From: Iphione sp. A-MEVVRFRX5
Taxonomy: Eukaryota
Reading direction: 5' to 3'
Length of the DNA: 64,000 nucleotides
NCBI GenBank assembly: GCA_976226885.1
Contig: OZ320316.1
Span: 37,200,001-37,264,000, forward strand
How positions within the stretch are numbered: position 1 is the stretch's first letter; every line of letters begins with the position of its first letter. The position numbers and the translations under genes were made by a program. Positions 7,692 to 62,286 of this stretch are shown piece after piece. Below the pieces are notes generated by a model. The model worked only from the letters and a program-made list of their open reading frames with translations, was not told the DNA's origin and searched no databases.

Positions 7692-7723
<32 letters not shown>

Positions 7724-26584: not shown

Positions 26585-26585
26585 C

Positions 26586-26670
<85 letters not shown>
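26585..26670. repeat. Poly-C run followed by (CT)n microsatellite
   Basis: C12 then about 35 TC units. Explains the LSLSLS ORFs at 26478 and 26539. Confidence 0.97.
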
Positions 26671-26672
<2 letters not shown>

Positions 26673-39400: not shown

Positions 39401-39635
39401 TGGTGTACACGGTGAAGAGATGTCCCAGCTTCACCCTGTGTCATTTACGAGCCAGAGTTATGGAGGTCCGACGAAATCATTTGCATCAGGAACATTTAGG
39501 ATATATACTATTAGCAGCAAACCTCTTGTTATTATCCAAAGACATATCGATACATATTGACCCTCGTTACACATTATACATTTAAAAAAAATCTCAAATA
39601 AACAAGAAAGTTTAAAGTGGAAAAGTGGCACTTAC

Positions 39636-39905
39636 CGCCTCTGGGGAGCGCCCCTGGCCATGAATCTTGTGGAAGTGTAGCCGCAGCCTGTCCTTTATAT
39701 CCTGGAGACATTGACAGTTGTCCTTGGGCACTCCGTGCTTTTCCATCAGCAGGAAGCCCTCCCATACCTCCTTCAGGCCGGTGACCTCCTCCAGGCTGAG
39801 TGCCCCGCCGGCACCGGTGCCGTGCAGACCGGCGCCGCTGGCCCGGCGACCTGGGCTCTGGAGGCGCTTGGGAGAGGAAAGGACGTTCTGTGGATAACCG
39901 GACAT
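39636..39905 (-). CDS. First coding exon (90 aa) of an uncharacterised gene divergent from the dynamin-kinase gene; carries a copy of the shared N-terminal module
   Basis: cacaccATG at 39905, then 270 nt open with GC-rich codons (MSGYPQNV...LSLEEVTGLKEVWEGFLLMEKHGVPKDNCQCLQDIKDRLRLHFHKIHGQGRSPEA), ending at a consensus phase-0 donor GCG|GTAAGT. Aligns without gaps to exon 1 of the + strand gene. Downstream exons not identified. Confidence 0.7.
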
Positions 39906-42296
39906 GGTGTGCCGAGTCTGGGGCCGGCAGTTAATCAATGGTCATCTATATCTCTCCGCTCGGTCTGCGTCTCCCACTGTGCCCTTTCGTGCACCACAGG
40001 CGACAGTCTAATGGAGCCCCTCTAGATTAGCATCTGCGAGCAGTTGAAGGCTTATCAGTCCGTTCCTCCCGATCACGAAATCTGCTAGATGTCGCAGATG
40101 TAACGTTTTCCGCGTGTTTCTGGAGAGTTGAATTCCCCTATTGGTTGCCTGCGATTAATCGGCATTTATAAATACTACTTACTCACACTGCTCCCGCTCC
40201 GCCCGATACCAATCCCCCGGAGTGACAACTACCTACTTAAAGCGCTCTCTAATAACGGGGGTGAGCGACTTTCTGTGAGAATCGATCTAGTGATATAATC
40301 TCACTTGAAGTGTCTGGGTTAACCGCAAAGCAAATATTCCTGTTTATCCGAAGGAAACAGTGAAGGTGGGGCCGAGACGAACGGTGTCGTGCTGTGAAGT
40401 GTCGTGGCCTGAAGTTCACTCAGAGAAAGGCGCCGCTGGAACTAAATTCGTTGGCGTTCTGCCCAGCCAGCTCTACAAGAGGAAGCAAAAACATGGGAGT
40501 TGAGAGTCAATTCAGGCAACAGTGGCAGGCGCCCGGCAACTGTTGACATTTTAGAAATTAGTTTTGGAAACGTGTGAAAAAACCCAGGGATGTATTCTCT
40601 AGAGCGGCCGCTTAAACTGGAGCCTGCCCCAGACCCTCGCTATCGGGGACGTAGTGCTAGGAAAGAAAACAAATCAAGGTCATCTGCACTGAGTCATCAT
40701 TCCCAATGGTTCCTGCGGTGGCATTCAATTATCAGTGTCAGGCTCAACCTTGTTTATATTGAAATGCTGCGTGGACAAATCACTTGTTCCATCCTACCAG
40801 ACAACCGCCGGATTTTTAATTCTAAATGAATACTAACCACAGAAATAGAAAAGAGACTGTCATTCTTGCCTCTAACATCACAGCTAATGTCGACTTAATA
40901 ATAATTATGTGTCAAAAGGGACTTTTTAATGTCTCCTTGTGATAAATAGGTCAACATTAATTAGTGAAGCTTTTCTGAGGCAAAAAAAATTATGTAGTTA
41001 CTTCCCAGCCGCCACTGAAACTTTTACTTCTAGAATACGAGCATAAAAAGGCCTGCTTCTGCATATAATTGAATTTGCCCTCAGATGACAGCTTAAGTGC
41101 ACTTAACGTTAACGGTCCCGAGCCTAAATGCTCGGCTAATAATTCATCTATGCTCAACCTGAGCAATTCTTTCCCGTCTTAAGTGACTACAGCCTTGGGC
41201 ATACAGACAAGACTCTGACACCATGGATAGGTCTGTTCGCAAGGGGCGCATCAGTGAAAATATGATGCCATCAAAGACGCCCGCGTGCACATCCCTACTG
41301 CTATTGACCCCGCTCCATGGAAGCTTTAACGCAGGCTGCTATAAGTACTGAACACCTTATTCATTTTGTATGGCCAACCGCGGCTTCCCCTGGCCTGCTG
41401 TGTCTCCCTCAGCCCTGTGTCAGCATGTCGGTGATATGGGTCATAGTGTCTAGTTGTTGCGATTGTGGCTAGGCGGCAAAGATACTCTTTATCATCAGCG
41501 CTGATACTGACATTTACTCGCTTCGAAGACATGAACCATTCTCACCGAGAACTCTACGAGAAAGAAGCATACGTAGCGACAGCCCAGAGTACAGCACAAG
41601 TTAGGGATGTCCCACCTAAAGGCAATCAATGACGAGTTATGACTGTCGACGCTTGCTGATTAAATCTAAACACTCCAGCGCTCCTGAAATATGACTGTAC
41701 TCACGAACTTTGTATTCTTCTTCCTCTTCCCGTTGACTCATACGTCTGGCGCAGTTTTACAACACCAAACGGTTTGGAGCGTGGCTTTCGTGCTGCTTAG
41801 TGGCGTACTTTTTAGTCGGCTGTCACCGTCAGTCTCACATGGTAGCAGTCTTGCCGCATAAGTACTGTCAGGTTAGCGAGTCGCTCTTCGAATGAGTCTC
41901 AGCAGTTGCCGACTTGCTCGGTCTGGTCCTGATTGTCAGCGTCTTACGTCTTCGCCTACAGCCGCTGCTGCTGCCTGCTGGCCGTTGGCTTTAGGAGAAC
42001 GGCTGCAGTGCTGCCACCAAGTAGACATTGTAGACTGCAATGACCGGCAGCTGTGTGATCGCCACCATCGACATCGCTGCCGCCGCTCGCTGCCACTGCC
42101 ACGGCTGCCACCGCCGCCAATGCTGCTTGCGCTGGTTCTGATGCGACCGCTTTGTTCAGTAGCTTTAACCCTTCGCTGCCGGTCAGCGATCTCACGTGCG
42201 TCAGCGCTCGGTCCGTCCCCGACTGAGCGCTGCACGCCGCCGCTACGACAGGCAATGGTCGCTATCGGAAACTCAGCGGACGTCGCGGCGGTCCAC

Positions 42297-43138: not shown

Positions 43139-43333
43139 ATGGCTCAGAAGCAGAAGGACGTTTCTCTGACCGAGAAACAGATAAATGAAATCAGTGACTT
43201 GTTCCAGGCCTTTCAATGGATTCAGAAGCTAGAAATAAACCCAAGTGGCATTACAGATCTAGAGGGTGCAAAATGTCGTCTGCTACAGTATCTACAGAAA
43301 GAATATGGCGCTGGCAAACATCGCCATGGAAAT
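43139..43333 (+). CDS. Dynamin-kinase coding exon 1 (N-terminal module, 65 aa)
   Basis: gccATGg; [65 protein letters not shown]; donor AAT|GTGAGT, phase 0. A further upstream exon cannot be excluded because the frame is open back to a possible acceptor at 43094. Confidence 0.78.
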
Positions 43334-46300
43334 GTGAGTATAGTTGAGCTTAAGTCAGTTGAAATAAGTGTCTATAAAGACAACATAATTAGCATTTCGT
43401 GTGTAACAGGTCTCTCAATAAATATGTCACATCATGTACTCCTTGGGTTTTCTAATAGATGTAGTTAATACGTTAATCGATATTTTACAAGCAAATAACG
43501 CATGTTCTAGTCGAATGTAATATACGATGATCTCGTATTTTACAGCAGTAAGTATCTTGTGTTCAGCCTATCTTTTCAGAACATTCTTCCACTACCATAA
43601 AAATCAGGACTGAGGGCGCCAACTAAGGTACACATAGTAGTAAGCAGACATGATTTATTTAGATCCAGTCTGGCACACAGACACAACACTCTCTAGTCTA
43701 AGAGGAAAAAATCATTGCTCTCTTAACAATCAGCCGTCAGTCGTGCCTGTCTAAGTAGGCTTATTTTCTGTCGTCAAACACAGGGTACGATTCTGAAAAA
43801 GACTAAGAGAGGCACGTTTATGATGTGTAAAGGTGAGGGAACATGGGAATCCATGAAGTTCGACAGAGAATTAGACTGGCCAGGAGCAGGGCTCTCCTGT
43901 GACACTTTGACATTTGATTTAGAGGAACGGGCTCTGACGATAGCCATAATTTGTAACCGCTGTTCGTGTCAACATTGTTTCCTTTATAGTGGATTGAACG
44001 TCGGTTTGAAATAGATGCAAAATTAATGCAATTTAGAATATCAAAATTATAATTAGGTTTACAAAAATTAGGTATTAATGGCACTGGCTTTGCTTTCCTT
44101 TATCATCTTCAATAAATAACCTATTTTGTGTACAGATATGATTCACCCAACATACTCCAGATCCTGAACTGCCACGTCAAACTGTCACATTCTCTGTATC
44201 CTTGGCCCTACTTCGTCAAACCTTCACTATGCATCTTTCCCCAAATACTTTTAATCAGTTTTTGCTGCAGCTTTCTATGAGCTCCATCACTCTTCATCTA
44301 CCTACCGCTACTACGTCGCCTTTACATTTTGAAATCTCTGCTATAAACGATATGTTAAACAAACACTACAGAACTGCGTCAATGAGATAGAACCCTGCCG
44401 AACGTACGATTTTGCTAATATTTTATCACAAATGTTGCTGTATTCCCAGAGATGATCCTGTGTAGTAACTGATTAAGAATAAGATGACTGCCATATAATA
44501 TATGTATAAATGAATGTATAATATTGTGATTTCATTGCCATTCAGTTTTTATTTAGCGAAAGACATCGAAGGCATCATCTCTCTAGATGGCTAAATCTAT
44601 AGTGATATGAAAGAACGGTTCGTTGCGACAATGTAAATTGATCGATTCCAGACTCGCGACTAGATAGGCCTCGATCCGACATGATACGAAACACTCCATC
44701 CAATTCTTCTCTCAAAAACAAATCAGATCAAACTTATTCAAGAGACTTCATTTACTAATGTGTACGATTAGTGCTTGAAGTCTAATGGTACTTGTATTAT
44801 TATTTTTACTTTGTTTAATGTATTTTTGCGTATGTCACGCCTTGGACCAGCCAATTTTTACCAACTTCTAGTTTAGATAGTATTTATAAATGTGTATGTA
44901 CATATAAGACATCCGTTAGGTTTTGCTATGAACGCGAGCCTATAGATAAGCCGTGTATACTATGCATTTGATTTTGGAGGTAGGTTTTCGCTCTGATACT
45001 GGGGCTTTTTTAAATGGCGTACGCCCTGTCGTACATGACCCCTTTCACATGTTCACAGGTATAGTTCCGCAGTATAGGAAGCAGGAAGAGCCTCCAAAAC
45101 GGAACTCGAGGCTGTGCAATTTATATCGCGAAATTAAATATGTGTAAATTTGTACGTTCGCGTGAACGTCTCTCTGGTGCCTGGCCTAATTGAATCTGGT
45201 GGGAGTAATGGTATTGTTCGTAGAGTTCGTGACGTCATGCAGTGTTGCACACAGAAGACCGAAAGAGAATCGATAATGAGGCAGACGACACCTAGCTAGT
45301 TGTTAATCTCGGTGGGAGAGGTGCTAGCGCAGATAGTGTGACGGTCTGTCTAGGTTTTGCTGGAACAACGCCATTGCTAATGAAGACTATTTGAAATCAC
45401 CTACATATAACGAATATGTTGGGAGAGGTTTTCTGAAACGACATGTTTGCGGACTCTTGAATCGTTTCTCAAGCTTAACATGAAAAAGAAAAGAAATTTA
45501 AGCGTGATTCGACAAAAGTTAGGCGCTCTGAATGTATAACAAATGTGAGAACAGTACCGTGGATTTAAATGCTATTTTTGTACTGTTGTTCTTTTCTGTT
45601 ACGTTCAACATATACACAGGAATCGGTTGAAGGATCGGTATAAGCTAAATTTATCTTTCCGAATGAATGCATGTTATTTCATGTGTTAGCGGGCGTGTTT
45701 GAGGATACTGGTACAGTGATGAGTCTCGCAATGTGATATGCACTGTTCATTATTCTGCTGTGAATGGAGGTTATTAAGGCTCGTGGAAAATGCTGGTTCT
45801 AAGCGTGACTCACGAGATGATTCGTAGAGAAACCTTTGGTAGTATCACTAGCGGAGCTATGCTCTTTCTATGACATTTAGAATGAAACGTCTCTACATTG
45901 CATTCTCCAGTATTGATGTCGTATGGTTATGATATCAATACCTATGTAGTTTGAAAATTATTAAGTATCTTAATCTAGATAGATTGTGACGTTTACTTTT
46001 CATTAGCGTTAGTCAGTTAAACCCAAATCTACGCACATGATTATGATTTTTTTTAGAAACATTGCCTCTTTCCTCTAAATAATGTTGTCGAACTTTTCTT
46101 AGTGTCAATTTTAGGGAAGATTTACGCCTTGACCAATATGTTTGTAAGGAAGCGGGAAAATAACTGAAGCATTACAAGTACGTTTCCATTTATCGAGTTC
46201 CTTTTGTATATATACACTCGAACAGGATAGTATGTGACAGGGTCAACTCATTGACACCGGAAGTTTTAAACATGTTGATAAGGTCCACACTAAAAGAGCG

Positions 46301-49300
46301 TGTAAATATAGAATTGGTCGATAAACTATAAACTGATACAATCATAAGGGAGGTTTTGTTGTGTCATAAAGCATAATTAGCCACCACCATCCCTCAGGCC
46401 TCGTGATTCAGAAATATACGAAGAATCGCCACGATGAAGGGCACCACCTTGTTCGTTGAATTTGATTTGCATTTTTCAATGCCCGAGTTATCGTTTCCTA
46501 CATGTGCAGGTGTCGGAAATCATGCAGGACGTGCTCGACAAGGACCGAGAGCTGAGGAGGGAGCTGCTCCAGCTCTACCGCCAGGTGGAGTCCTATTTCA
46601 CCCAACTCCCACTGGCCCGTCGCCGTGAGCTCGAACATAGTATACCGGAAGTTGGCGAGCAGATCCGGCAGAATGTTGACAGTCTAGAGCGAAGTGATTG
46701 CCATATCCTTGTAGCAGGTACTCAAACGACTGTATACATGTATGCATCCAATAAGTGGTATTACTTCTACAATCATGCAAATTTGACACCCACCAGCAAC
46801 AGACTCTGCTTTATAAGATGAGATATAATATATTTATGGCAAAGAATATTATAAGTTTGATCAGGACGTTGTCACGCCCATCTATCCACATGCAGCATGT
46901 ACGTAAAATGTATACAACTGTACATGCAAGCACCATCAACTTTTATAGCTTGATATTAAGGTCTCTAAGATGGCATGACATACATGAATTACCCTGGGTT
47001 GGAATACTAGCATAATACTATTGGATCTTCAGAGACCAGCACACTAAAGGTTTCCCCTTGGCCTTCTTTTGAATAGATTTCTGCGGTCTTGTTATCCTTA
47101 AAATTCCACACATAAACCAATAGCCTTTTTTCATAAGTTGTGGTCCATGAACCCTTGCCAGGGTCTAGTAAATCTATCTAGTGATAGTCAATGTTTTCAA
47201 AGTTCGGCATGACCCTTCATGATTTGGAACCTGCACCGACCTGTGCAAGTCAGCACTTATACCATGTCAGCCAGCTCCCAAACGATTTATTACCGTCAAG
47301 ACTATCCTTCACAAAAGGAATCCCATGTGGGCTGGGGAGTGCCTTACCCCCCTTCCTACATTTTCTTCTACTCTCTCACCCCTATACAAAGGACATATAT
47401 ACATATGTGAAATACAAACGTATGATTCAACTTCATGAGATTCTTTCAGGTATTTCATGTTGACTTGTTTATTTGTATACATTTGTATATCCGGTATATG
47501 TATAATGACTGTGTCAGTTATCATGGTCTGAATCATGGCTTATATCGAGTTCGATGAGCATACTATCAGTTAATATTAAGGTCCAAATCATTCTCTAATA
47601 CATTTTGCGATCGTTCATCAAATCCCTTTCTGAAAGTGAAATTTTCACTTTTCACTCATCGAGTGCTATGTCATATTCAGATATAAAGATGGGGCTTTGG
47701 TAACAACACTCAATTCCAATATAATCTGACATTAGTCATAATCTCAACATAACATATTTCTTCTCTCAACACCACACTATCAAAACATATTATGAATCAT
47801 TGGGTTCTTTTCGCGGTATGTACCAGTGGATACGTGGAGGTGAATATATACAGACTGCAGACAATACATACATATTTTTTCCTATTCATTCTATTGAAGT
47901 TGTCTGTGAAATATTGTTACGCCGTCGGTGTTAAAACGTTAAAAAGAATAGAAAGACAAGTATGGCAAAACGCAGGTGATTAATAAAACATTTTCTCTTC
48001 CACCACAGGCGAGGTGTCTGCGGGGAAGTCGAGTCTATTGAACCTTATTCTTGGAATAGATCTTCTGCCTACTTCTCTCCTCAGCTGTACGTCAGTTATG
48101 TGCGAGCTTAGGTAACTACAATAAAGTTACCAAATTATGGAATGTGTATAGAAAGCAGGACCTGTTAATTCACAGCCAGCGTTGACGAGTGGATATAGTA
48201 GATGTAAAGAATATGCGATGTTTATTTTGTTTTACCTGTACCTCCTAACCAAATTAATAAAACGCATTGATAGTTTTCAAATGAACGCCTAACGCACACT
48301 TTGTACCTAGAATGTTTTCGTTTATTTTCTGTTCTCCATAGTGAGAATGTACGCAGCTATCACTTCGTGGTCATAGTTTACACAATGCCTACTCGTTACC
48401 ATTCTCTTGCTACAATATACTGTGATTTGTCAATAATGTCACTCCTCCTAAGGCATCTGTAGGAGCTTCCATTGTTTAATGCATGATGTGAATAACTTCC
48501 AATGACTCCAATTATTATGATTCGTGCTAGATGTGTATATCTGTGTGTATCTAAAGGCGTTTAAATTTTAATGTTATCAAATTACAGTTTAAATTGATTT
48601 GCGGTTTATATACGTCAATTATAAAGAAATGTATAAGAATACAAAACATATTTTGGGTACAGAAGCTTTAAAATGTGGATTCAAAATATGATCGTGGGCG
48701 TTATTTCTCTCATGTTTACGAGAACTCCCTTTTTTCATTACTGCAAACATTTTTCACCTTAAATGTGGAACGTACAAACTAGTAATATGATATTTGTAAA
48801 ATATAAGTAACCATGATCACTCTTTTTCATCTCATTTATCTACAAAACACCTTTAGAAAACTCTCTCAAGGGAATCGAGAATTTCGTATTTATATCCATT
48901 ACCAATCTTCAAACAGTCACCAAAGCGATCAGTCACAGGTGTATCATACAAATCAACCGCAGTGAGTTTAGCAGAAATCTATACAACTGCAGAAGACAAT
49001 GAAAATGTGTCATATTGAATTATTTTTCCTGGGGTCGATTTGACTCGAGTTCTGACGGCAGTATACCGGTTGGAACGATCCCTATTCTAAAAGTAACAGA
49101 CAAAATTAAACTATACATTTTGGAATCCCAAGGACTTTTTCATTTAGATTATGCGATGACGGCACTCAATTGACAGAATACGTGTGATATAACCAGTTAC
49201 ATACATATATGTATATACATGTGTCAGGTGGCAAGTCTGAATCTGATCAATTTGGGAATTGCCTGTCACCACTGGTGAATTGATCATTGGTTTGTAAATG

Positions 49301-52300
49301 CCTAACCTAACCTGAAGAAGCCGGCAATTCAGCAAGGGCGACTCTGATAAACAAGCACTGGAGAGGTTGTGTACATGAGCACAACTTTGTTAACTGTTCT
49401 GACCGGCTGATGTGAAGGGGGACAGCATCTAAGGTGAAGTGGTATCAGTACTGAACTCAAAGAGTAGGACTTGTATATAAAAAGATACAGAACTTAAATG
49501 ATAAGGAAGGTTAGAGAATTCACTAAAAATAATAATAGAGATCTAAAATGCTGAACTTGAACTAGCATTAATTCTTACCTTTAGAACTCGGCCTTGAAAT
49601 AAGAAGAATGAGTATCATAAGAGAAATATAATAACATCGAAAATCAGTACAGTTTTCTAGCCCCGTAATATCTCTACATAGAGATGTGTTGAGACAAAAA
49701 TCTATTGGATTGTATTGTTCTTAAAATTATTCACTGGTAGGACAATTTGTGAATGCTTCAGCCAACCATGTGTAAAAAATAATTGGTGGATGGGCAAGTA
49801 TGATTTGCAAATAAGACCAATTCAGGCATACACATGTTGATGTATATGCACTCATATCGAAATAAATCAAAATTCCCTTGTCAACCAACTGAAACTCTGT
49901 GATACAAATGGCCTTGAAATGCAAAAGCACTCAGTAACTTGTGAACCGACTGTGAAACGAAGTATGTTCAGTTACTATTATAAGGAGCACTGTGCATGTG
50001 TTCACCCGCAGCTCTCCAATGGGGACACCTGTATAGTGGTGATTCATAAAATCAATATTCTCGGTGACCTAACTCGTGTATCCATGCACCCAAGGGTGTG
50101 TGTGATCTGTAAACTGTTACTGGCATGATCCAAAGGCGAACTTTCAGATAAATGCATATATTTTAGGCATGGAAGTCAGAGACTTACTGTCTATTTTGCA
50201 TGTATGAAAGAATATACATATACATATGTATGTGTATGCCTTAATAAGGGAAATATTTTTACAAAGTGAGCTTTTTCATAAACAAATATGGCTAAAAATA
50301 ACAGCAGTTTGCCATTCTAGCATAAATATGGCTGATATGGGAGGTCAGAAATGATTTTATATGCACCTTTTAGATAGCGTTTCTGCATGCTTAAGCCAAT
50401 GTTGATGCACTCCTTACAGTATAGATAGAAACATTGTGTGGAGAAGGTAGATGACTGCGACATTAATTCTGCAAATCAACAATTTGCTGGGAGGCACAAT
50501 ATTTGTAGTAAGTGAAAGTAAAAGGGCTTTCTTGACACTACACATCAACGAATAAACGACGCACTGTTTTCATCAGGACACTTAACTGTCTCGTGTAATT
50601 CATGAGTATTGTTTTAATAGACAATATATGGAGTAACATTCCTTGTATTGAGCATGTTTAACTGTATGCCTCCCATTACCAGGTATGGAAAGACTCGCCA
50701 CGCCTTGGCCTTCTCCGTGGATACAGCTCAGGCCCCGGAGAGGATCGACCTCAACTGTGACGACCCGGCGGGCGTGCTGGCCCAGTATGTGCACCAACGG
50801 GGCGACCGCAAGTCAAAATTCCCTTACAAACGCGTGGAGATTTACTGGCCATTTCCTCTACTACAGGTGACCATATATCATCACGATTGTCTAAAGACAT
50901 CCATCGCGGTGTGTTAGTACATCAGATAAATGTAACTTTGCGGTCCCTCTGTCGATCTGCACAGCACCAGAATTGCCGTGCAATTACATGTACAGTGAAA
51001 CCCCTGTACTAAGGACACCCTCTATAAAGGACACCTCCTACTATGGACAGACTGGAAACAGAACCAAATCTATATATGCATGTTTAAATACCACCTCTAT
51101 AAAGGACGCCCCTCTTTGTGGACACTTTTGAGTCAGTCCCTTTGCTGTCCATAGTACAGAGGTTCCACTGTATATGCCAATGTGTAGGGAGCCGAGCCTC
51201 ACGGGATTTCTCTATGCCGTTAATTGAGGGGGTACATGGTGTGGGGGAGAGGCATTATCACTACAATGGGTTAAAGTACATGTCTAGATTTGTCAGTGGC
51301 TCTGAAACATAATTTATTTACCTTTTTCTCTTGAAATGTGTATTGACTATACATCCACTCTTTGTATATGAATATAGAATGCCTGTTGGTCTACTCAACT
51401 CAGTCTATTATTAAGAATTCAATGCCCGGCTATTTTTCGACTTAAGGTTTATATTCTTTGCAAATGTCAAGTAAAAACTTCTGGTACTTATCAATTTCTT
51501 TCTTTCTGTACGTCTTTCTCATAAAAAGGGGAAGGTGGCAGGTACCCAGCTATTTTTTTTCTTTTTTAGAGCTTTATTTACACTGGAAGTAATATTACAA
51601 TACGTGTATACGATCCCGGTATTTTCCTGAAATGCTTTCCTAAACATGAGATGATAATGGTAATGTAGTATATACAGTGTAATTCATGTAACAAGTGTGA
51701 TATGTAAAACGCCTTGCAATCCATCCATCATTCACATTAGGTTTTACCCTCGGAGACCCCATGCACATGTCATCATGAAAACTCTGTGCCATCAACTGAC
51801 ATAACATTCTCAATAGTCTATCCTCTTATCAGTAATCTGTCCTCAGAGTCCTACCTTTGCTTCAATTTCTGTTGAAATTGTTTCTAAATTAAAAGTTACT
51901 AGTGTTCTGTAAAGTTCAGTTCAGAACCGTGGCAGAGCACCAGGTTCTATATGATATTCACCCAAAAGTCGCCCCATGGAACCGTGTCAGAGCCCCAGGT
52001 TCAGTATAACACATACCCAAGAAGTTCACTCACTATCAGAACTACCAGAACTATCCAGCCCTATGATATACTCATGCTTACCAACCTTTATTACTAGGAC
52101 TGTGCCAAGTCCCACTGTTAAAGAAACTACCGTCTACCACCTACATGAATATATTAACTATTCCCACATTACCAGGACTTTCTGGCCCTATTTTATTATC
52201 ATATTTGCAACTAGGACTGTGGCAGAGCCCCAAGTCCCACTATGAGAGAGAAAACCAACTTTTGCTCGCATGAATATGTTAGGGCAATGAGTCCTTATGT

Positions 52301-55300
52301 CAATTTAACATAACCATGATACCTGCTTTCTATTGTATTATACACCCGAGACCTGTATCTAAGTCATTTTGGTGCTATGGTACTCTATATGTTTGGACAT
52401 CCTCTTTTCCTAACATCTTTAAATATCTCCTACAACCTGCATAGTTCATAGCGCTTAGTTTCTTGGCATGCTTCTCCCATAGTATATTTTGAAATCTTCT
52501 CCTCTCTCTCGAAAGGATCGTATGGGTTTTTCATTTCATCCCGAGAAGCAATGAGACACAATACTTAGGCAGAGTTACTCGTAAATATTCTAGCTATCTT
52601 ACAGTGATCATTTGCTCTCATAGGGAGGCATCGTCATTGTTGACAGTCCAGGTATTGGGGAGAGTCGTGAAATGACCCGGATGGTCAAGGAGTTTCTCCC
52701 GACAGCCTTTGCGTTCATCTATGTCGTCAACAGCAGCAACGCTGGTGGATTGCAGCCAGATAGGGTACGTATTTAACTACAGTCATTATTCAGCACATGG
52801 ATTTCCTACACCATATGAACGGTACTAGAAGTGTAGGAGTATCATAAATACTTCCAGTCAGTGTTAGTCTGTATGGTTATATGGCTATATCTACAATGAG
52901 TATATAAAATTATAAATGCCACTTTTCTACCAGAGAGTGCTCAAACGAATCCTATTAGAAGTCTGATTTGAGTGCCATTTTATACAAGACAATGTACGCA
53001 GTGTAACAATTAGGTTGGGGGTATGTATACAGACAATGGGAATGTCACTCAACGTTGTAAGAACTGTTTTGTGAAGTGTCACTTTCCGTTTTCCCCCAAA
53101 ACGTTCAAGTCTATATAGATTTCATATACGGGCGGATATACCAACAGAGAAGAAGCGAATCTCCGTCCGCAAACGATAGTTTAAGCAATATGGATTTTGA
53201 CATAAAGAGGGCTAGATATGGGCGACGATCGTATATTGATAATTACCCAATAACAGTAAGCATTTTGAGTTTGAAAAGTTTTAAATTGTATGGAGAATGT
53301 AGATGAATGCGCATAATGTCGCATTCATCTACATTCTCCATACATTTTGAAGCATTTTGCGAACAAACAAGTGATATTGAACAAGATGGTTTGAATTCAT
53401 TAAAAAATGAAAGTTAGCCACATAATAGATGGGGGAGAAGGCCGGGGGGTCAGAAGATCGGTTTCTGTATTCAGTAAGTCACCATGAACGTGACTTACTA
53501 CGACACAGGATTAAACCTGACTTAATCAGACCGACTATAGACATATGTGAAATCTATCTCATCTTTGTTGATCTAAAGAAAATTTTATTCAATAATCAAA
53601 ATTGAATTTGGACAACTTTGCTCGTAGTACGCGCTAGTGTTCCATCTCGCTAGTGCATAACGCACCGCATATATGACACTAGGATGGTGCAGTATCGCAG
53701 CCTCATGAATATTGTTTGTTTGGAATACTTTGCAGCTTCAGGACCTCCTGGCTGAAATAAGCCGTCAGAATGAGGACCACGTAGTCTTCAACCCCCGTTC
53801 AGCTATCTTTGTGTGTAACAAATGGGATCAGGTCCCCTCCGACGAGGCTGAGCAAGTGAGAGCAGATACAAGGACGAAGCTGCGCTCTTGCTGGACGGGA
53901 GTTCATCACTCACAGATATTTGAGATGTCCACTACCAAAGTAAGCCCTGACAAAGGCTTCCTTCCTCGGGAGAAATTATAATTGTGTTGGCTGTTCCTCT
54001 CTGATCTTTTCCACCTTTTCGGTGCGATTATTTCTCAGCATCCAAACTATGTAATGTTCTGGCCGTGACACATTATCCCGCTGTGTTTATCATCAATGTA
54101 AAAACGTTACGTCGCCCGCAGTCTTTTAATTTCAATTTTGATCTTTCATCCATTTAACGTGACGTTTATTTAATGACAGACCACAGAAAACCTCTTTCTT
54201 TCTATTAAATTCGTAATGGGAAAAGTTGAAAGACCAGTCGCAAATTATTGTCCAGGTAACACATTTGGTAGTTTTACTCAATGTTATTTTATGATACTGT
54301 GCCATAACCTCGTATATTTAGTTACTTGCCGGGCTCAGGTTCGTGTTTCATCGAGATTTACCTAATTGGCAGGCGAAGAAGTCCCTTCAGGAGTCAGGAT
54401 ACGTCACCGAAGACTTGGGCCGGCTCCTCGAGGGGATTGAGGCCTTGCTGCCCATTAGTCTGCGCTGTAAACTGGAGGTTCATTATAGGTATGGATCTCT
54501 TAGCGGCCCACTCTGGGCATTGAAATTGCACCTCTATCGAAGCAAGGCGTGCAGTGACCAGCACAATCAATAAACTAGCAGATGAGATATTATGGAAAGT
54601 CATGAGAGGGGATAATTTCAGAAAGCGCGCATTTTATAGCGTGGCAAGGCCCATATATTAAAGACATTTACTGTCGTATTCATAGCCTCCAAGAATGGAG
54701 ACATGTGCTTCGACAAGAAAATCGATAGCAATGCATTAGTCTGGAATTTCATTCAAATCCGCACTATACATCGCTTAAAGCATGAATTGCCTACATTAGC
54801 GATGGGCGACGATTTGCCACGACCGCCTGTATATTAAAGGAATGTGTTGAATATAAAGACTGACCATAACCAGTTGGGCCTTTCAATAAAATGCAACTCT
54901 GAATAGCCGGGTCATAGACATCAATGAAGAATTCCTCAGCTGAACATATATGTTTTTAGTGCAATACCAAAATCCATCTGTATTCATTACCACGGGAGAC
55001 AAATGCCTGTAATAGTCATTCTTTTGAAGGGTAGCCCCTCATATTGTGACTAGACCACATCGACGTCTGATTTACATGCATAACTTAATTAATACAAGCA
55101 TGATTTCCATATGCCTATGCATGTGTGTTTTCATAGCTGTGCCACTGTAAAAGGTTTACACTCTGAAAACTGGGGCACATGGCCAGAGTGTATCATGGTC
55201 CCTGTGATTCTATGGCAGTAAAAGCAGGAAAGCTGATGCAAATTTGGCCACAAATGGCAAAACTGAGGCTAATTGGGCTGTAAAATGGTAAACCGAGGCA

Positions 55301-55919
55301 AAGTCAGGGTAAATGTAGCAAAACTGATACAAATGTTGCTGTAAAACACTAAAACTGGTGCACATCTGGCCAAATATCAGTGAAAATCCAAAAACTGGTG
55401 CTATAAAATTCCAAAACTGATGCCATATTGTTTGGAAATGTGCCATTTTTGCCTGATATCAACCCCTAAAAATAACTTTTGCTATACTCTGTTCTGAAAC
55501 ACGGTCATGAAAATTGGGACATACCCCATTCCAAAATCATGACAGTGAAAACACACTACGCTTTAGATAAAGGACGAGGGCCCACAATTACGGGCTATAA
55601 TGTACAAGGTCTTTAGGACCGAATATAGTTAAAGAACCCGTAATTGTTGGTCCATGGACTTGATCTGATTTAAACTGCCCCTCCCTAAAACTGTAAGATG
55701 TACGGTGTGAGGATTGGGTTCACCGAGTTGATAGACGAGATGACTCTCGTGCCCTCCTTGAACTGAGCGAAGTGACGGATCGGTAGAGATAATTTCATGC
55801 CGCAGCCTCTCAGTCAGGGACATTACTGTACGATGTGTCAACTGACTGATACATGACCCTCTTTACGCTCGTACATTTTCAGAGGCTAATGAGAGTAATG
55901 TACGGATTGGAAAGAGAAA

Positions 55920-55990
<71 letters not shown>

Positions 55991-58900
55991 AACTCAACAA
56001 AAAAGAGACAGACGACGTGGAGGGTCTCCCCACACATTAATAAATTGATACAAGGATGACACATGAAATTAAGTACGAGGGCCTTTTCACAAGTCCTTTG
56101 TTGTTAGTAAAGTGACTAACGAGGGCCTTGCCACTGCAACTATCCCCTCGACCCCCCCCCCCCCCCCCACCCCTCAACTGAGGAATTTGCCGACGCATTC
56201 AAGAAGGTTTGATTGGGTCTTAACTGAACGATTTTAGAGAGAGAGGGATAAAAAGACAACTGAGCAATTTGCGGACCCAGTCAAGAAGGTTTGGCGTCTG
56301 CCGAGGACCATCACCACCACCCTGCTGGCCAAGTCATTCACGTGCCAATCAAGAGCCGTCACAATCAGTAACGATTTGCCACCATGTAGTGGGTGGGTGG
56401 GGCATGCTGTAACCATTGTGCTGGCTTTGAAGCGCAATTGACAGGAGCATTGTTCTTCACAGAGGCCATGTGCCACACATCGGTTCGAGTCTGCACCGTG
56501 CCCTGACAAGATTTCATCTCAGCAGACACAGAAACAACAGCAGAAGTGTGAGACAACTGTACAATTACGTACCCAAAAGTATACACCAACAAACACAATA
56601 GCACAGACATACGTCTATTTAACCTGTTTCCTTCTTCTTTTCACCGTTTCCTGCGATGCTCAGAGCGTCTATGTACGATTAGAATTCAAACAAACATCTT
56701 TATTATTGAATCTCTTACCTATGCATATCATCTTGGAACTAAAACAGCCTATATGCCAACTAGAACATGCTTTATACAGGTGGTTAGTGCAACTGCTTCG
56801 CCGATCGGCCTTTTACCTGCGGGTACACATCGCCAACGAGACGAGGTCGGACGAGGAGCGGAAGGAACTGACTGAGCATTTGACGAACCAGCTGGATCGG
56901 CTCGAGACGGAGGCGAACCGCGTCAGGACCGAGCTGAGGGATGACGTCTACGAACGAGCCCAGCGGGCCTGTGACGACCTCATCGAACACCTCGACTCAC
57001 CACCAACCAGGGCACGGTTACTGCTGTGGCAGGTGGGGTGAACTTAATCATGAATGTCCGCTCACACCTGACACCTGGGGAATATAGGCCTACAGTCTTT
57101 AATTTATCGCTGTCCATTGCTATTAGCTATACTCTAAGGTACATGTATGTAATTGCCTGAACGTATGCCTCGCCATGTCCGCCTTGTCTGTGCCCATCGA
57201 ATTTGTCTCTTTGTTGAAGTCCCCTTCCCCCTCTCTTGTCTCTCCCTCTCGCCGTCACTCTTTCTGTCTCTCTCTGCCTCTGTCTGTCTGTCTGCCTGTC
57301 TGTCTGCCTGTCTGTCTGTTTGCCTCTCTCTATTATTTATTCCCACTAGTGCTGAGTCACTCATTTGTCTCTTGCGCTGTCATTCCCGTTTGCCACCATT
57401 ATTTGTTGGGTCCCAGATCCAAGCCTGTAAAATTTAACGTCATCATTCTGTCACTAGAGGACGCCTCCAATTCAAAGAACAGCACCATCTGGTGTGTCCA
57501 TTGCACTTTACTAAGTGGTAACGGAAAATCGTGTTAGTAGTGATTTCTATTAATGAAACGGCACACACTTCTCAGCAATTAGATTTAATTCGACCAAAGA
57601 AACACACGTATCTGATTTTGGCTAGATGCAAAACAGACGTAAAATTCATGAAAGCTCGATCTGTACAACAGTGCGCCCGGCATACCACATGCAGACAGTG
57701 GCAATGAGCTACTGAGCTACAAAAATTGCAACCAGCAGGAAAATCGTAATAATCAAATGTACGTTTTACTCGCTCTATCACGCTACTTCCTGTCATAAAT
57801 AATGAGTCGTGCATAATAAATCGTGAATAATGAACCTAATGAATCGCGTACACCGAAATTTCATTATTTAATATCAGTGCAATACTCCTTAAACAGACCT
57901 CTGTTTTTTACACCTTGTATGTCTTTGTTAACCCAATAGGGACTGGAGATGCCTGCAGGCACTCCCCACATAGGTCCTGAAGATGCCTACAGGCACTCCC
58001 CACATAGGCCCTGAAGATGCCTCCAGGCATTATTTAGGTCACATTATATCATGATGTGTTTTTTGAATTTTGTGATTTTTCCCATAAAGAACATATCTAA
58101 CACAATTGTAATAGTGTAATTTTTCATTATTTTTATCAAAAATATATAATGATTTATGAATTATTATATTATATCCATTTATTGGATGTCAATAGTCAAA
58201 GCCTTAGTCCTTCAGGAGGATAAAAACCCCTATAGCCTAGCCCTATAGGGATTAAGTATCAAACCTGTCCCAGTCCTGAATGGGTTAAAATAGATATTTG
58301 TGGCGATTTCTTCTTTGGTTGATGATTACTTACTTATTAGGAAACTTTCATATGTACAAATGGGTTTCCCTCCCTTTGATCTTAAAATCTGATCTAGCTC
58401 GTTATTATAATACATGTATTTCAAAGAATAGACCTACGTAGGGCTTGAATAAGAACACGTACAGCATGTCATGCAATGAAGTCCTGTTGGACAGAGTCAT
58501 TGTCCAACCGAAAATTATTTATTTTCCTGTTTCCTACCTTCAGGAGAGTGAATGTCCTGATGGCTCAGATTGGGAGGCGCTCCAGGAGCTGCTCATTGCC
58601 AAGATCAACAAGCGAATACGTAGAGAGGTCAACGATTGGGACTCGCGCAATTGTGTATTCCAAGTAATTGTGTATTTAGTCACTGTGTGTAATTCCATAA
58701 CATGGATTTCGTGAATTGAACATGTGGTAGAGCAATGAATGGATACTCTCCAGTAAGTTGCAATTTTCACGTCCGTTGTTCTTCCTTTATATTCAGTCGT
58801 TAAGGAAAGGCTTAATCTATTTTATGAAACCTCATTTGATCATGGATGTACGTTTCGATTTAGATTATGGTCATCCTTTGTTGTTATCACGTAGGAAATC

Positions 58901-61900
58901 CAGATGAACATGCTCCAGAAGTTCCAGCAGGAGTTTGAGTTGATGGAGGACCAGCTCTCTGTGATCGAGGGTAACATGATGGGGACACGTAGTACTCGCT
59001 ATGACGCCCAGGCGGCGCTGCGCCAGATGCGCCTCCAGCGGCGCCCGAGTCTGACCAAGGGCCAGAAGATCGCCCTGGGCCTGGCGGCGCCCATACTTCT
59101 ACCGCTGGGCGTCGTCGCCGGATTCTTCGTTCTGCCCGTAGCAGGCGTGCGAGCGGTTCGGAACAAACTCAACGAGATGAAACTGCTCAAGAGCTACCGC
59201 GAGAACAAAGAGAAGACCCTGACCACGATGACACAGGAGATTCTCAACTCGTTCATCGACAAGAGCGCCCTGTCGCGGCTGATTCGAGAACAGCTGCAGG
59301 TCGTGACGGCCAACATGGAGACGATGCTGTCCTCTGTGCCCAACATCATCGAAGCTGACCGCATTCTTATTGAGAAGCTGCAGGAGGAGCGCAACCAATC
59401 CGAGGTGGCCCTCGCTGAGCAACTCCTGCCCATGTACCAGTTGTGCCTGGAGCACCAGGGCAAACTCGACCTCTTCTTTGCCGAAAAGATACGGACTTAC
59501 GACGTGGATTTTAAGGATCTGGACTGGGATCCGTCGCGGCCGCCCATCGCCTCGGGTAGCTTCGGGGATGTATACGCCGCCCTGTGGAAGAACGGCAACG
59601 GTAACGACAAGGATGTCGCCATCAAAATTCGCCGCGAGGCACTGGACCAGAGCAACATCACGGAGCTGCTCGTCGAAGAGGAGAACCTAAGGTAAGGAGA
59701 TTTGTGCATGTGGCTAGTCAAAGGACAGGGCATAAAACTATACATGTACAGTGGAATCTCAATTTACGACCACATCGATTTCTCCATTTCGACCATTCTC
59801 TATTTAAGACCACCTGAAGTGGGTACCAAAATGTTGTTTTCTATACATTTGATACCCTATTTACGACCAAATTCACTATTACGACCACTTTTTATGGGAA
59901 CAAAGGGGTGGTCGTAAATAGAGATTCCACTGTATCTCGATTAAGGATTTCCATGTTATTTTTCACTGTCCACTTCACCTACATGGATTTGGAGGAGGAT
60001 CACTTCTTATATCGTCCTTGCCTCATTTTGTGTAATGATAGTTTGTAGAAATAAGGTGTAAAGGCGGAAGATAGATTGGAAGCATTAACTGTGAGCAAGC
60101 CACTCGGAATAAAGGAATAGCACATGTGCGATATCGAAGTCAGCTACATGTATATATCTCCTAAACCATTGCACTTTCACAAATCAATCCCTGTTGTCAG
60201 CGCTACCGGTAAGAGATAGCTGGCTTTAAACACAAGGCTAAAAACTGCTTCGACCACCTTTCCTTTGTAACATTTAGAAAGCTGCATCACGAGAACATCG
60301 TCATCTACTACGGTACGTGTGCGCGGCGCCGAGATCCGGACGGCCAGCTACAGATCCTCATGCTGATGGAGAAATGCGAGGGAACACTCCGAGCAGCCAT
60401 CATCGGCAAGAAGGCCAAGAACCCGGGTAAAATCGTCGACAACCCATCTATGCAGTTAGAGGCCCAGCGGAGGGTGCGCAGCTACTGTCGTCAGTTATGT
60501 GCGGCCCTTGCTTACATGCACGAGCGAGGGCTGGTACACCGGGATCTGAAGCCACAAAATATACTGGTGACTATTATTGTGTACTTTGTATGGATTTCCA
60601 GTGTTAGAGGGACAAATATATTGCATCGTTTCCTCTTCGCTGTATCTAGTGCTACAAATGCATGACTTTTACCGGACTTCTGTTGTTTCTGTTGTTGAAT
60701 TATTTGCATGTAGATATTCTGTACTTTGCGTCAGCGTGTGTGAATTCTGCCAGCTTGAACCTGTTTTATATCAATTTTATCTGCACGAATTCTCAGACAC
60801 ACGCACACGAGATGCCGTCACCAAAGTCTCAGGTCTGTCTATTTCTTGTTGCATCCATCTCTATTTCTCACCATATAATTGCTGTATTAGCACTGTGCCA
60901 TCTTCAGAATCCCCTTTTCTTGATGATACCATCATCACCCAACGGACGCTATGATAGATCACAATGTCGCCCTCTGTCGACAGCTGGTGGTTGCCGGGGG
61001 AAATGGATCACATGGATCCTATCCAGCCTGAGCGCGCCCTGCCGGCAGACATGCTAATTGAGCATGAGCTGATGCGCCATGAGGGCTTTGGGGCGGAAGA
61101 TACTAGTAAAAAGGTGCTTTCTTTATGCTAGACCCGGTGTAGTCCCATCGTTGGGCTGGAGAGGTGGCTTCAGCAGAGAAAGATCACCTACGGTAGAGCC
61201 GGTAACCTGCCTTGCTGACGAATGAGCTTCCAATGCGACAGGCTTGTCTCTATCATTCAAATTGATCGCACTAACCCATCTAAATATTGGACGATGATTA
61301 GGTCTCATCACTCAAACACCAATATGTATTCCAACCGGCTCTCATTTGTCCCCCAAGGGATCCCACCTATCTATGCTTCTCTCTTAACCTCCCTCAGCGC
61401 GAAGATCAGTTTGATATGATCGCTCAGTGCTCAGCCTGACAGGCGTCATAGTTTCTGTACCTCAAATCTATGTGACGCGATTATCATATATGTAAGTAAA
61501 GCGTCGCACATCATTACTTCGAATCTCTCTGGTTGCCAAATTTATAAAGTGTAGAATGATCCCATATTTGAAATACAATTATTGAAGAATCGGTAGATTC
61601 GAGTCTTTAAACTAATGAGGTCTGACTGTATATACAGGTGTGCATGTATATGTTTCCAGACTCATCTGTGTTAAATTTGTACCTATGGCATCCCCATAGG
61701 TACGTATCCTCAGCGCCAGTGGACCTAATTTAAGCACGAGAGTCCATATCCCGCCAGGCAGATAGGTAGGGCAACTAAACAGATCTATAAGGCAGTGGAA
61801 TATGTCCCAGCAGCTATAACATATGCAACACCTTTAAGAATTATAACGGTTCATGTATCAATGGGGAGACTACTAAGATTTTTTTCTCTATTCGACCAGC

Positions 61901-62286
61901 TGAACAAGCTTGAAGTTGTGAAGATCGCCGACGTCGGTCTGACCAAGCCCGAACGCGACATTTCTGGCACGGTCTGCGGTTCGACGGCTTACGCGGCGCC
62001 TGAGGTCATTGAGGGCATTGAATACAACAAGGCTGCCGACATGTACAGCTTCGCTGTTATCACCTGGGAGCTGTGGTATGGGAGGACGGTGGCCGACGAG
62101 CTGACTGCTCTACATAAAGGTAGCGTGGAGACGGCGGTGAGGGCCGGCGCCCGACCAACCTTCGTGTCGGTGGCCCCGGCGCAGTCTTGGCGGGACGTTA
62201 TCGAGCTGTGCTGGAATGGTGACCCACGCAAGCGATTGTCAGCCGGAAGATGCTTTGACTTCTTCAACAGCTTGAAAGACATCTGA
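43139..62286 (+). CDS. 12-exon gene, 998 aa: N-terminal helical module + dynamin-like GTPase (BDLP/mitofusin type) + helical stalk with hydrophobic segment + DSTYK-related protein kinase
   Basis: join(43139-43333, 46510-46717, 48009-48111, 50683-50866, 52624-52764, 53736-53939, 54373-54488, 56780-57032, 58544-58663, 58895-59691, 60278-60566, 61900-62286) = 2997 nt. All 11 introns are GT-AG with matching phases and no internal stop. gccATGg start. GTPase motifs GEVSAGKS / LPTSLLSCT / DSPG / NKWD. Kinase motifs ASGSFG / VAIK / HRDLKPQN / DVG / YAAPE / DMYSF. Confidence 0.92.
46510..46717 (+). CDS. Dynamin-kinase coding exon 2
   Basis: tgcag|[26 protein letters not shown]...SDCHILVA(G)|gtactc; phase 0 to 1. 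Confidence 0.9.
47020..47170 (-). mobile_element. Possible degraded SINE core fragment in intron 2
   Basis: Minus strand AAGACCGCAGAAATCTATTCAAAAGAAGGCCAAGGGGAAACC resembles the core of the SINE at 33290-33330. No tRNA head recognised. Confidence 0.35.
48009..48111 (+). CDS. Dynamin-kinase coding exon 3 (P-loop/G1 and G2)
   Basis: ccacag|(G)[33 protein letters not shown](R)|gtaact; phase 1 to 2. Too short for the ORF track. Confidence 0.95.
50683..50866 (+). CDS. Dynamin-kinase coding exon 4
   Basis: taccag|(R)[12 protein letters not shown]...[14 protein letters not shown]|gtgacc; phase 2 to 0. Confidence 0.93.
50993..51170. mobile_element. TA-flanked MITE (pogo/Tc1-like) in intron 4
   Basis: TA-CAGTGAAACCCCTGTACTAAGGACA ... 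TGTCCATAGTACAGAGGTTCCACTG-TA: ~25-bp imperfect TIRs with internal CTCTATAAAGGAC subrepeats. Confidence 0.85.
52624..52764 (+). CDS. Dynamin-kinase coding exon 5 (G3 DSPG)
   Basis: tcatag|[47 protein letters not shown]|gtacgt; phase 0 to 0. Confidence 0.95.
53287..53344. repeat. Perfect 25-bp inverted repeat with 8-nt loop (intron 5)
   Basis: TGTATGGAGAATGTAGATGAATGCG-cataatgt-CGCATTCATCTACATTCTCCATACA. Confidence 0.95.
53736..53939 (+). CDS. Dynamin-kinase coding exon 6 (G4 NKWD)
   Basis: ttgcag|[33 protein letters not shown]...QIFEMSTTK|gtaagc; phase 0 to 0. Confidence 0.95.
54373..54488 (+). CDS. Dynamin-kinase coding exon 7
   Basis: tggcag|[38 protein letters not shown](R)|gtatgg; phase 0 to 2. 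Confidence 0.9.
55215..55425. repeat. Degenerate ~30-bp minisatellite (AAAACTG-anchored units)
   Basis: Recurring (a)aaactga/aaaactgg...aaat at roughly 25-40 bp spacing, about 7 units. Confidence 0.55.
55910..55987. repeat. (GA)n microsatellite
   Basis: About 32 GA units. Explains the ERERER and LSLSLS ORFs. Confidence 0.97.
56780..57032 (+). CDS. Dynamin-kinase coding exon 8 (helical/coiled-coil)
   Basis: atacag|(R)[17 protein letters not shown]...[11 protein letters not shown]|gtgggg; phase 2 to 0. Confidence 0.92.
57230..57330. repeat. (TGTC/TGCC)n and (TC)n simple repeat
   Basis: tgtctgtctgtctgcctgtctgtctgcctgtctgtctg within a pyrimidine-rich tract. Confidence 0.9.
57932..58284. mobile_element. 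piggyBac-like MITE (TTAA target duplication) in intron 8
   Basis: TTAA-CCCAATAGGGACTGG ... CCAGTCCTGAATGGG-TTAA. Internal 34-bp unit AGATGCCT(G/A/C)CAGGCACTCCCCACATAGG(T/C)CCTGA repeated about 2.4 times. Confidence 0.75.
58544..58663 (+). CDS. Dynamin-kinase coding exon 9
   Basis: cttcag|[40 protein letters not shown]|gtaatt; phase 0 to 0. Confidence 0.92.
58895..59691 (+). CDS. Dynamin-kinase coding exon 10 (stalk, hydrophobic segment, kinase N-lobe start)
   Basis: acgtag|[10 protein letters not shown]...[27 protein letters not shown]...[10 protein letters not shown]...VAIKIRR...EEENL(R)|gtaagg; phase 0 to 2. Confidence 0.96.
59749..59932. mobile_element. TA-flanked MITE (pogo/Tc1-like) in intron 10
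   Basis: TA-CAGTGGAATCTCAATTTACGACCAC ... GTGGTCGTAAATAGAGATTCCACTG-TA: 25-bp TIR with one mismatch and internal TTTACGACC subrepeats. Confidence 0.9.
60278..60566 (+). CDS. Dynamin-kinase coding exon 11 (kinase hinge to catalytic loop)
   Basis: atttag|(R)[14 protein letters not shown]...LMEKCEGTL...[13 protein letters not shown]|gtgact; phase 2 to 0. Confidence 0.96.
61900..62286 (+). CDS. Dynamin-kinase coding exon 12 (kinase C-lobe, stop)
   Basis: gaccag|[35 protein letters not shown]...[13 protein letters not shown]...CWNGDPRKR...LKDI-TGA. Confidence 0.96.
   Translation: MNKLEVVKIADVGLTKPERDISGTVCGSTAYAAPEVIEGIEYNKAADMYSFAVITWELWYGRTVADELTALHKGSVETAVRAGARPTFVSVAPAQSWRDVIELCWNGDPRKRLSAGRCFDFFNSLKDI

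Follow-up and report, generated by a model that had tools for sequence, protein, structure and literature searches.

A gene of Iphione sp. that joins a BDLP-class dynamin GTPase to a TKL-like kinase

Dynamins of the type found in the bacterial dynamin-like proteins (BDLPs) have been studied in bacteria, in chloroplasts and, as mitofusins, in mitochondria. Here we describe a gene in which a GTPase of this class is joined to a protein kinase. The gene lies in a 64,000-nucleotide (nt) stretch of DNA from Iphione sp. A-MEVVRFRX5 (GenBank assembly GCA_976226885.1, contig OZ320316.1, forward-strand positions 37,200,001 to 37,264,000), which is referred to as the window and contains no runs of N. On the plus strand, the coding sequence extends from position 43139 to position 62286 of the window and comprises 12 exons separated by 11 introns, with a GT donor and an AG acceptor at each splice site (Table 1). 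Its 2988 nt encode 995 amino acids (aa) and a stop codon, with no internal stop or frameshift. An original prediction, made from the sequence letters, had proposed a complete open reading frame (ORF) of 998 aa. The ORF was indeed intact, but its length differed: the exon 1 donor at 43333 (AAT/gtgagt) leads to 995 aa, and 998 aa probably reflects a weaker donor at 43342 (ATA/gttgag), which adds 9 nt. The starting positions that had been given for the G1, DSPG and NKWD motifs of the GTPase (48009, 52642 and 53817) proved exact.

The placement of exon 4 was based on tblastn and a splice model, and a phmmer alignment of a homologue pairs this exon with BDLP between switch 1 and G3. Pfam searches were run on single exons.

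Table 1. Features of the dynamin-kinase gene and of its head-to-head neighbour, in window coordinates
Feature	Position	Strand	Description
Neighbour's first coding exon	39621-39854	-	Head-to-head, ~3.2 kb upstream, in ORF 39612-39938; ~60-aa N-terminal module
Exon 1	43139-43333	+	aa 1-65; start codon and small three-helix N-terminal module
Exon 2	46510-46717	+	aa 66-135; long N-terminal neck helices and first G-domain strand (splice model)
Exon 3	48009-48111	+	aa 135-169; G1 P-loop and G2 threonine
G1 motif GEVSAGKS	46717/48009-48029	+	aa 135-142
G2 threonine		+	T162 region
Exon 4	50683-50866	+	aa 169-230; insertion in the G domain that separates G2 from G3
Exon 5	52624-52764	+	aa 231-277; G3 and family-specific NAGG...DR motif
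G3 motif DSPG	52642-52653	+	aa 237-240
Exon 6	53736-53939	+	aa 278-345; G4 and end of G domain
G4 motif NKWD	53817-53828	+	aa 305-308
Exons 7-9	54373-54488, 56780-57032, 58544-58663	+	aa 346-508; helical neck/trunk of dynamin module
Exon 10	58904-59691	+	aa 509-771; last trunk helices, membrane hairpin, kinase N-lobe
Hydrophobic hairpin/paddle	59063-59161	+	aa 562-594; Kyte-Doolittle peak 2.39 over 19 residues
Kinase domain	59522-62283	+	aa ~715-995; end of exon 10, exons 11 and 12
Kinase G-loop SGSFGDV		+	
Kinase VAIK	59615-59626	+	aa 746-749
Exon 11	60278-60566	+	Kinase, part of aa ~715-995
Kinase HRDLKPQN	60537-60560	+	aa 858-865
Exon 12	61900-62286	+	C-terminal part of kinase, to aa 995
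Kinase DVG	61930-61938	+	aa 878-880
Kinase APE	61996-62004	+	aa 900-902

A functional gene for a three-part protein

The locus is a functional gene for a 995-aa protein made up of an N-terminal module, a GTPase of the BDLP class and a TKL-like kinase. An alternative is that adjacent dynamin and kinase genes were read together, or that the locus is a decaying paralogue, and the fact that no RNA support was obtained for it would be in keeping with this. However, the fusion is not an artefact of the gene model, because exon 10 alone spans the junction: this single ORF encodes ~205 residues at the end of the dynamin module together with the first ~55 of the kinase, and its Pfam kinase match falls on exon residues 215-259. 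The possibility that the GTPase and kinase exons belong to separate genes, named with the original prediction, is thereby contradicted. The kinase-less relatives P0231 (709 aa), P0239 and P0253 align over their whole length to residues ~13-715 of the model and end at the kinase start.

The complete protein also has counterparts elsewhere. A word-indexed search with the relative P0008 returned 274 proteins, and the description of relatives given here covers the best 120 of them. Residues 1-985 of the model are collinear with residues 1-1004 of P0155 (37% identity), and approximately 60 full-length proteins of other animals align from residue 1 to ~985 with 31-39% identity, the amphioxus and hemichordate proteins among them with ~37%. 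About 270 proteins from five phyla share this architecture from end to end. When 41 homologues were compared, 82 alignment columns were at least 90% conserved, and the Iphione protein keeps the conserved residue in 80 of these, the exceptions being T137V and I265V.

A locus in a related genome (ENA ERZ25767047), here called L001, has the same exons 6-12. Nucleotide similarity between L001 and the window is confined to the exons and ends a few bases from the splice sites, and the introns cannot be aligned. Over 610 ungapped codons, the nonsynonymous rate (dN) was 0.088 and the synonymous rate (dS) approximately 2.1, which corresponds to a dN/dS of 0.043, with zero stop codons; exons 8-9 are 80% identical in nucleotides and 88-90% identical in amino acids. 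These comparisons indicate that the gene is under strong purifying selection. With an open frame of 2988 nt and conservation limited to exons, an artefact or a pseudogene appears extremely unlikely.

A full kinase had been proposed at the C-terminus, and every catalytic motif was found there: the G-loop, the VAIK lysine, the alphaC glutamate, the HRD...N loop, the aspartate of the DFG type and APE. Pfam Pkinase or PK_Tyr_Ser-Thr matched the end of exon 10 and exons 11 and 12 (3e-14, 1e-13), so that both expected domains, Dynamin_N and Pkinase, were detected on single exons. The kinase is TKL-like and, judged by its motifs, looks active, and its catalytic residues are as conserved across the family as those of the GTPase. 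In a second comparison that used the whole model, kinases filled the list of matches and the dynamin part was left unaddressed. A match of the family's kinase to the PADLOC profile 'mad6' (the MADS defence kinase; 1e-47 to 1e-61) was rejected as non-specific, as STK10 and ordinary bacterial Ser/Thr kinases reach 1e-72 to 1e-78.

Class and structure of the dynamin module

The dynamin module occupies residues ~66-715 and consists of a G domain, a helical neck, a trunk and the hydrophobic hairpin. Pfam Dynamin_N matched exon 3 at 6.9e-8 (profile positions 7-38) and exon 5 at 2.7e-4 (profile positions 102-140). Among 50 relatives, the glycine, lysine and serine of G1 and the threonine of G2 are invariant or nearly so, the aspartate, proline and glycine of G3 and the asparagine and aspartate of G4 are invariant, and the tryptophan of G4 is at least 90% conserved. 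The G4 motif is NKWD and not the T-K-x-D of classical dynamins, Mx and DRP proteins, and no Pfam match to Dynamin_M or GED was found on any of the best 120 relatives or on ten further representatives.

For structural work we used a hemichordate homologue, P0010 (991 aa, collinear, 37% identical), in place of the window protein. When residues 1-700 of P0010 were compared with PDB sequences, the matches were Nostoc BDLP (7.9e-15), Campylobacter DLP (3.8e-12), MFN1 (2.4e-9), IniA (1.6e-8) and MFN2 (3e-7), and no classical dynamin, Mx, atlastin or GBP was among the matches at E <= 1. An AlphaFold 2 (AF2) model of P0010, built from a 50-member alignment, had a mean predicted local distance difference test score (pLDDT) of 77.4 and a predicted template modelling score (pTM) of 0.72. 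It contains helices at 62-125 followed by a strand at 129-135 over the part that corresponds to exon 2, and long helices at 361-540. In a Foldseek search of the PDB, the best match to this model was BDLP 2j69 (E 1.6e-17, 741 columns against a 671-residue chain, template modelling (TM) score by target 0.55), with kinases and IniA next in the ranking. In the ESM Atlas, both the Atlas model and the AF2 model matched clusters of cyanobacterial BDLPs at TM ~0.6 over ~550 residues. When the N-terminal part was used alone, the 40 nearest entries were all real BDLPs, and a mitofusin ranked 17th by features, below BDLP. A PADLOC profile for LeoBC, which is reportedly the dynamin of the anti-phage system Eleos, matched residues 95-679 of P0155 at 1.8e-15, and an NCBIfam DynA match was obtained at 2e-13.

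The dynamin module is thus of the BDLP class and nearer to bacterial BDLP than to mitofusin. The original prediction had called it BDLP/mitofusin-type rather than classical, with four GTPase motifs and a long helical region; the motifs were found exactly, the homologue model folds as a BDLP neck and trunk, and BDLP was the closer of the two groups. The best solved match is the Nostoc punctiforme BDLP (PDB 2J68/2J69), whose class includes Campylobacter DLP1/2, IniA, LeoA/LeoBC and DynA. With these proteins the Iphione protein shares the motifs GxxxxGKS, the switch-1 threonine, DxPG and N-x-W-D, neck and trunk helices that fold back, and a hydrophobic, putatively membrane-inserting tip. It differs from them in that its gene is eukaryotic and has 11 introns, in an extra N-terminal module of ~65 aa, in the C-terminal kinase and in a hairpin of ~30 hydrophobic residues that is longer than the BDLP paddle. 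The mitofusins MFN1/MFN2 (Fzo) belong to the same BDLP-like branch and have motifs of the DSPG and N-x-W-D type and a membrane hairpin between helical regions, but they are the weaker sequence match and lack a kinase; no Fzo_mitofusin domain was reported on the best 120 relatives.

The hairpin is the sole strongly hydrophobic segment of the protein, and it is kept, with its proline and glycine, in amphioxus, hemichordate, coral and Lingula members. In the homologue model it is located at the trunk tip, within a stretch of low pLDDT (541-599). The trunk helices that flank the hairpin pack together, so a re-entrant topology is likely, in which the two enzymes would share the same side of the membrane. 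In one mollusc clade (bivalves, a gastropod and a cephalopod), a basic, non-hydrophobic loop replaces the hairpin, at the equivalent of window aa 545-605 (59012-59194). The presence of a hairpin or a basic loop suggests that the family contains anchored and peripheral sub-families.

The N-terminal module has a methionine 1 that is invariant in the family. An AF2 model of exon 1, from 40 homologues, had a pLDDT of 77 and contained helices at 12-17, 21-30 and 41-57. BDLP clusters align only from residue ~69 on, so the module is absent from bacterial BDLPs. A Foldseek search of the PDB with it gave no significant match to a known fold (best E 0.74, with SAP among the weak rows). An identity as SAP was not retained: Pfam SAP matched no more than 2 of the 41 members (0.012), and 'SAP-like' would be a guess.

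Relatives in animals and the relation to DSTYK

The Iphione gene, which is unannotated, is one of the lophotrochozoan members of an old family that has many copies and combines Dynamin_N with Pkinase domains, and this family spans cnidarians, molluscs, brachiopods, hemichordates and cephalochordates. The best 120 of the 274 relatives come from Branchiostoma (dozens of loci on many chromosomes), Ptychodera, Glandiceps, Saccoglossus, scleractinian corals, an octocoral, bivalves, a gastropod, a cephalopod and Lingula. Nearly all of them carry PF00350 together with PF00069 or PF07714, and both domains were present in nine of ten further representatives. In Oculina, at least 10 models lie on one 34-Mb contig. 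An exhaustive HMMER search with exon 10 returned 201 representative clusters, the best 150 of which were listed, and the full-length relatives match it at residues ~520-790. In a quick maximum-likelihood (ML) tree, several old clades mixed deuterostomes, lophotrochozoans and cnidarians, and the window protein stood beside Lingula P0188 and a mollusc clade with an approximate likelihood-ratio test (aLRT) support of 84.

As had been expected, relatives are present in databases under names such as 'uncharacterized' and 'DSTYK-like', and also as 'bacterial dynamin-like protein' and 'mitofusin-like'. Some members from Branchiostoma lanceolatum bear the spurious names MAP3K12, MAP3K13, MAP3K15, MYO3B, TEC, FGFR4 and SLC15A4. 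Kinase-less BDLP modules of ~600-710 aa, named 'mitofusin-1-like', 'mitofusin-2-like' or 'bacterial dynamin-like protein', occur in corals, Lingula, amphioxus and Saccoglossus. Two recent surveys of the dynamin superfamily do not contain the fusion; BDLPs and mitofusins are expressly left out of one of them. With this architecture, the dynamin superfamily and the GTPase-kinase fusions each gain a new variant, and its members are known to databases and unstudied.

DSTYK is a human disease gene, associated with renal and urinary-tract malformation and with the spastic paraplegia SPG23, and the N-terminal two-thirds of its product are treated as a region of unknown function. The Iphione protein resembles DSTYK in length and in the position of the kinase at the extreme C-terminus, and several family members have been automatically named DSTYK-like. 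In agreement with the original prediction, however, the gene is a paralogue of DSTYK and not its orthologue. DSTYK clusters without detectable Dynamin_N (a chordate cluster represented by a 927-aa protein, with Dynamin_N in 0 of 67 members, and a mollusc 'DSTYK-like' cluster of 972 aa) coexist with separate Dynamin_N and kinase clusters in the same phyla, molluscs and chordates, whereas the GTPase of the window gene is intact and the gene is part of a distinct, paralogous family. It has been considered that the gene might be the single-copy DSTYK orthologue of Iphione sp., and whole-protein feature and structure searches do rank DSTYK as the nearest group outside the family. However, the window protein has all of the GTPase motifs and nests with Lingula and mollusc members that carry both domains. 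In addition, DSTYK was absent from the best 150 of the 201 matches to exon 10, and it was not returned by a 540-residue C-terminal query within the limits of a word prefilter and a length window of 297-945 aa, chosen to shut out the family and let in DSTYK (~927 aa); this query yielded seven family fragments and then generic kinases. Orthology is, on this evidence, highly improbable.

Whether DSTYK descends from the same architecture was approached by structure. With language-model features of the whole protein, DSTYK clusters were the nearest non-family group (0.93, 215 of 256 features) and made up 24 of the 40 best matches. The chordate DSTYK could be superposed on the Atlas model of the homologue over 656 residues (TM 0.53/0.57) and on its AF2 model over 652 residues (root-mean-square deviation 5.9, query 52-991, TM 0.53/0.56), and the mollusc cluster behaved in the same way. 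Unrelated long kinases aligned over only ~400-440 residues, with a TM of 0.32-0.38. Because the kinase accounts for only ~270 of the superposed residues, some 380 N-terminal residues of DSTYK appear to follow the dynamin-kinase architecture, and the comparison of homologue models thus extended well beyond the kinase. Other comparisons gave no such signal: DSTYK was not among the 40 BDLPs nearest to the N-terminal part alone, the kinase domain alone is of a generic TKL type with no DSTYK-specific signal, and the family shares almost no 5-residue words with DSTYK motifs, which is a heuristic comparison only. The proposal of a DSTYK-like kinase segment therefore stood for the predicted structure and features of the whole protein but not for the kinase by itself. 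Likewise, the proposal that the gene shows the ancestral architecture of the DSTYK N-terminus was favoured by whole-protein structure and features, but no sequence-level link was obtained.

From the models, DSTYK is probably a derived relative in which the GTPase motifs have decayed. Its descent from the BDLP-kinase architecture is the reading that we favour, at about an even chance, and the argument is one from predicted structures only. The fuller proposal, in which a degenerate BDLP module from this family makes up the DSTYK N-terminus and the Iphione gene is the intact ancestral form, a GTP-driven kinase switch that possibly serves invertebrate immunity, falls slightly short of that. In the DSTYK literature we found no description of the N-terminus as dynamin-like. 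If the link is true, it would account, in structure and evolution, for an N-terminus that has lacked an explanation in a human disease kinase. The published DSTYK phenotypes are membrane-related: fragmentation of notochord vacuoles, the mTORC1/TFEB lysosome pathway and the phosphorylation of STING at late endosomes.

Proposed function and surrounding sequence

BDLPs and mitofusins are known to open in a GTP-dependent manner, to dimerise through their G domains and to polymerise on lipid, and kinases can be activated by induced proximity. We propose that the protein combines a BDLP-class GTPase, a membrane hairpin and a TKL-like kinase so that assembly, dependent on GTP and membrane, switches the kinase, and we consider this explanation reasonably probable. 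As in the biology of BDLPs, mitofusins and kinases, the hairpin would attach the protein to a membrane, with the GTPase and the kinase both in the cytosol. GTP binding would open the folded BDLP module, leading to G-domain dimerisation and oligomerisation on the membrane, and this assembly would bring kinase domains together for trans-autophosphorylation. A membrane or nucleotide state could in this way be converted to a phosphorylation signal, much as LRRK/ROCO proteins couple their ROC GTPase to a kinase. The ROCO proteins (LRRK1/2 and the bacterial and Dictyostelium Roco proteins) likewise contain a dimerising GTPase and a TKL-type kinase in one chain, but the analogy is functional only: their GTPase is a Ras-like ROC-COR and not a dynamin, they have no membrane hairpin, and there is no homology outside the kinase. 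Pfam gave no match to Roc or COR on the exons, on the best 120 relatives or on the ten representatives.

Several points weigh against the proposed kinase switch. That the GTPase cycle drives kinase activation is proposed purely by analogy, and we found no paper on the dynamin-kinase family in the literature and no biochemical data for any member. The structures are those of the 37%-identical hemichordate homologue and not of the window protein. The hairpin is modelled at a pLDDT of 30-38, so that its membrane topology had to be inferred, and the mollusc clade without a hairpin means that not every member of the family can be permanently anchored. The gene model was built from genomic sequence and homologues, and no sequencing runs were listed for exon 10 or for exons 9-12 of the locus.

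It is conceivable that the protein is an innate-immune sensor or effector, in which the dynamin part would sense damaged or pathogen membranes and the kinase would signal defence. This would refine the switch rather than exclude it, and we regard it as doubtful. Defence dynamins that recognise membranes occur in animals (GBP, IRG, Mx) and in bacteria (DynA and Eleos LeoA/LeoBC), and the N-terminal half of the family matches LeoBC, but this likeness reflects membership of the BDLP class only. The family occurs in lineages with expanded innate repertoires and has many paralogues per genome, several of them on the same contig, as in Oculina. The proposal of an expanded invertebrate immune family was therefore borne out as regards copy number in invertebrates, with the dozens of Branchiostoma loci. 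However, the 64-kb window holds a single copy of the gene, and this copy is under strong purifying and not diversifying selection. The 'mad6' match adds nothing, as other kinases score higher. The small, adaptor-like helical module of exon 1 is also found in the head-to-head neighbour described below, which could fit an immune role. So could vertebrate DSTYK, which is reported to phosphorylate STING at late endosomes (PMC11933320).

Alternatively, the protein could be a housekeeping enzyme of organelle dynamics that serves to fuse, tether or repair membranes, as mitofusin, BDLP and DynA do, with a kinase that tunes the protein itself or local partners and relays no signal. The complete BDLP architecture, together with a membrane hairpin, corresponds to a design for fusion or tethering, and the sequence is strongly conserved. 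Two zebrafish reports describe fragmentation of notochord vacuoles upon loss of DSTYK, a membrane-fusion phenotype (PMC7012607, PMC6981171). In contrast, such a role fits poorly with dozens of paralogues per genome and with the family's disappearance from vertebrates, insects and nematodes, a loss that is only apparent, as judged from the best 120 of the 274 relatives. Nor would a kinase that merely tunes its surroundings lead one to expect catalytic residues conserved as much as those of the GTPase. We consider a purely housekeeping role unlikely and retain the membrane- and GTP-dependent kinase switch as our explanation.

A complete BDLP wired to an active-looking kinase is found from corals to amphioxus, often in many copies, and is not discussed in any paper that we found. 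Its architecture makes the idea of membrane- and GTP-dependent assembly as a kinase switch directly testable. If true, it would represent a second, independent design of GTPase-kinase signalling beside ROCO/LRRK. It may also be an instance of a membrane GTPase of bacterial type that animals have kept or acquired.

In blastp and tblastn searches, the first exon of the head-to-head neighbour aligned with residues ~2-95 in over 30 family members. The best match is Lingula P0238 (31.7% identity over 60 aa, E ~1e-5 in a small database), in which LQDLKERLRLH corresponds to LQDIKDRLRLH of the neighbour; the exon is only 19% identical to exon 1 of the window gene itself. No other family exon was found upstream, and ten open segments of the minus strand gave no Pfam match. 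The neighbour is best taken as context of the dynamin-kinase gene. Between the two divergent first exons, the segment 41890-42500 has a GC content of ~0.50 and spurious alanine- and arginine-rich ORFs on both strands, and it may be a shared CpG-rich bidirectional promoter.

Long (GA/CT)n microsatellites are present at 55880-56035 and 57200-57340, in introns 7 and 8, and at 26560-26700 upstream of the gene, where they give rise to spurious ORFs rich in RE, SL and LS. In L001, the intron between the homologues of exons 8 and 9 contains a 930-aa ORF with RVT_1 and Exo_endo_phos_2 domains (6473-9265), which belongs to a retrotransposon of the long interspersed nuclear element (LINE) type; the window intron at this position is only 1.5 kb long. 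A 473-aa ORF with a NADAR domain lies just upstream of the LINE ORF, at L001 3628-5049.

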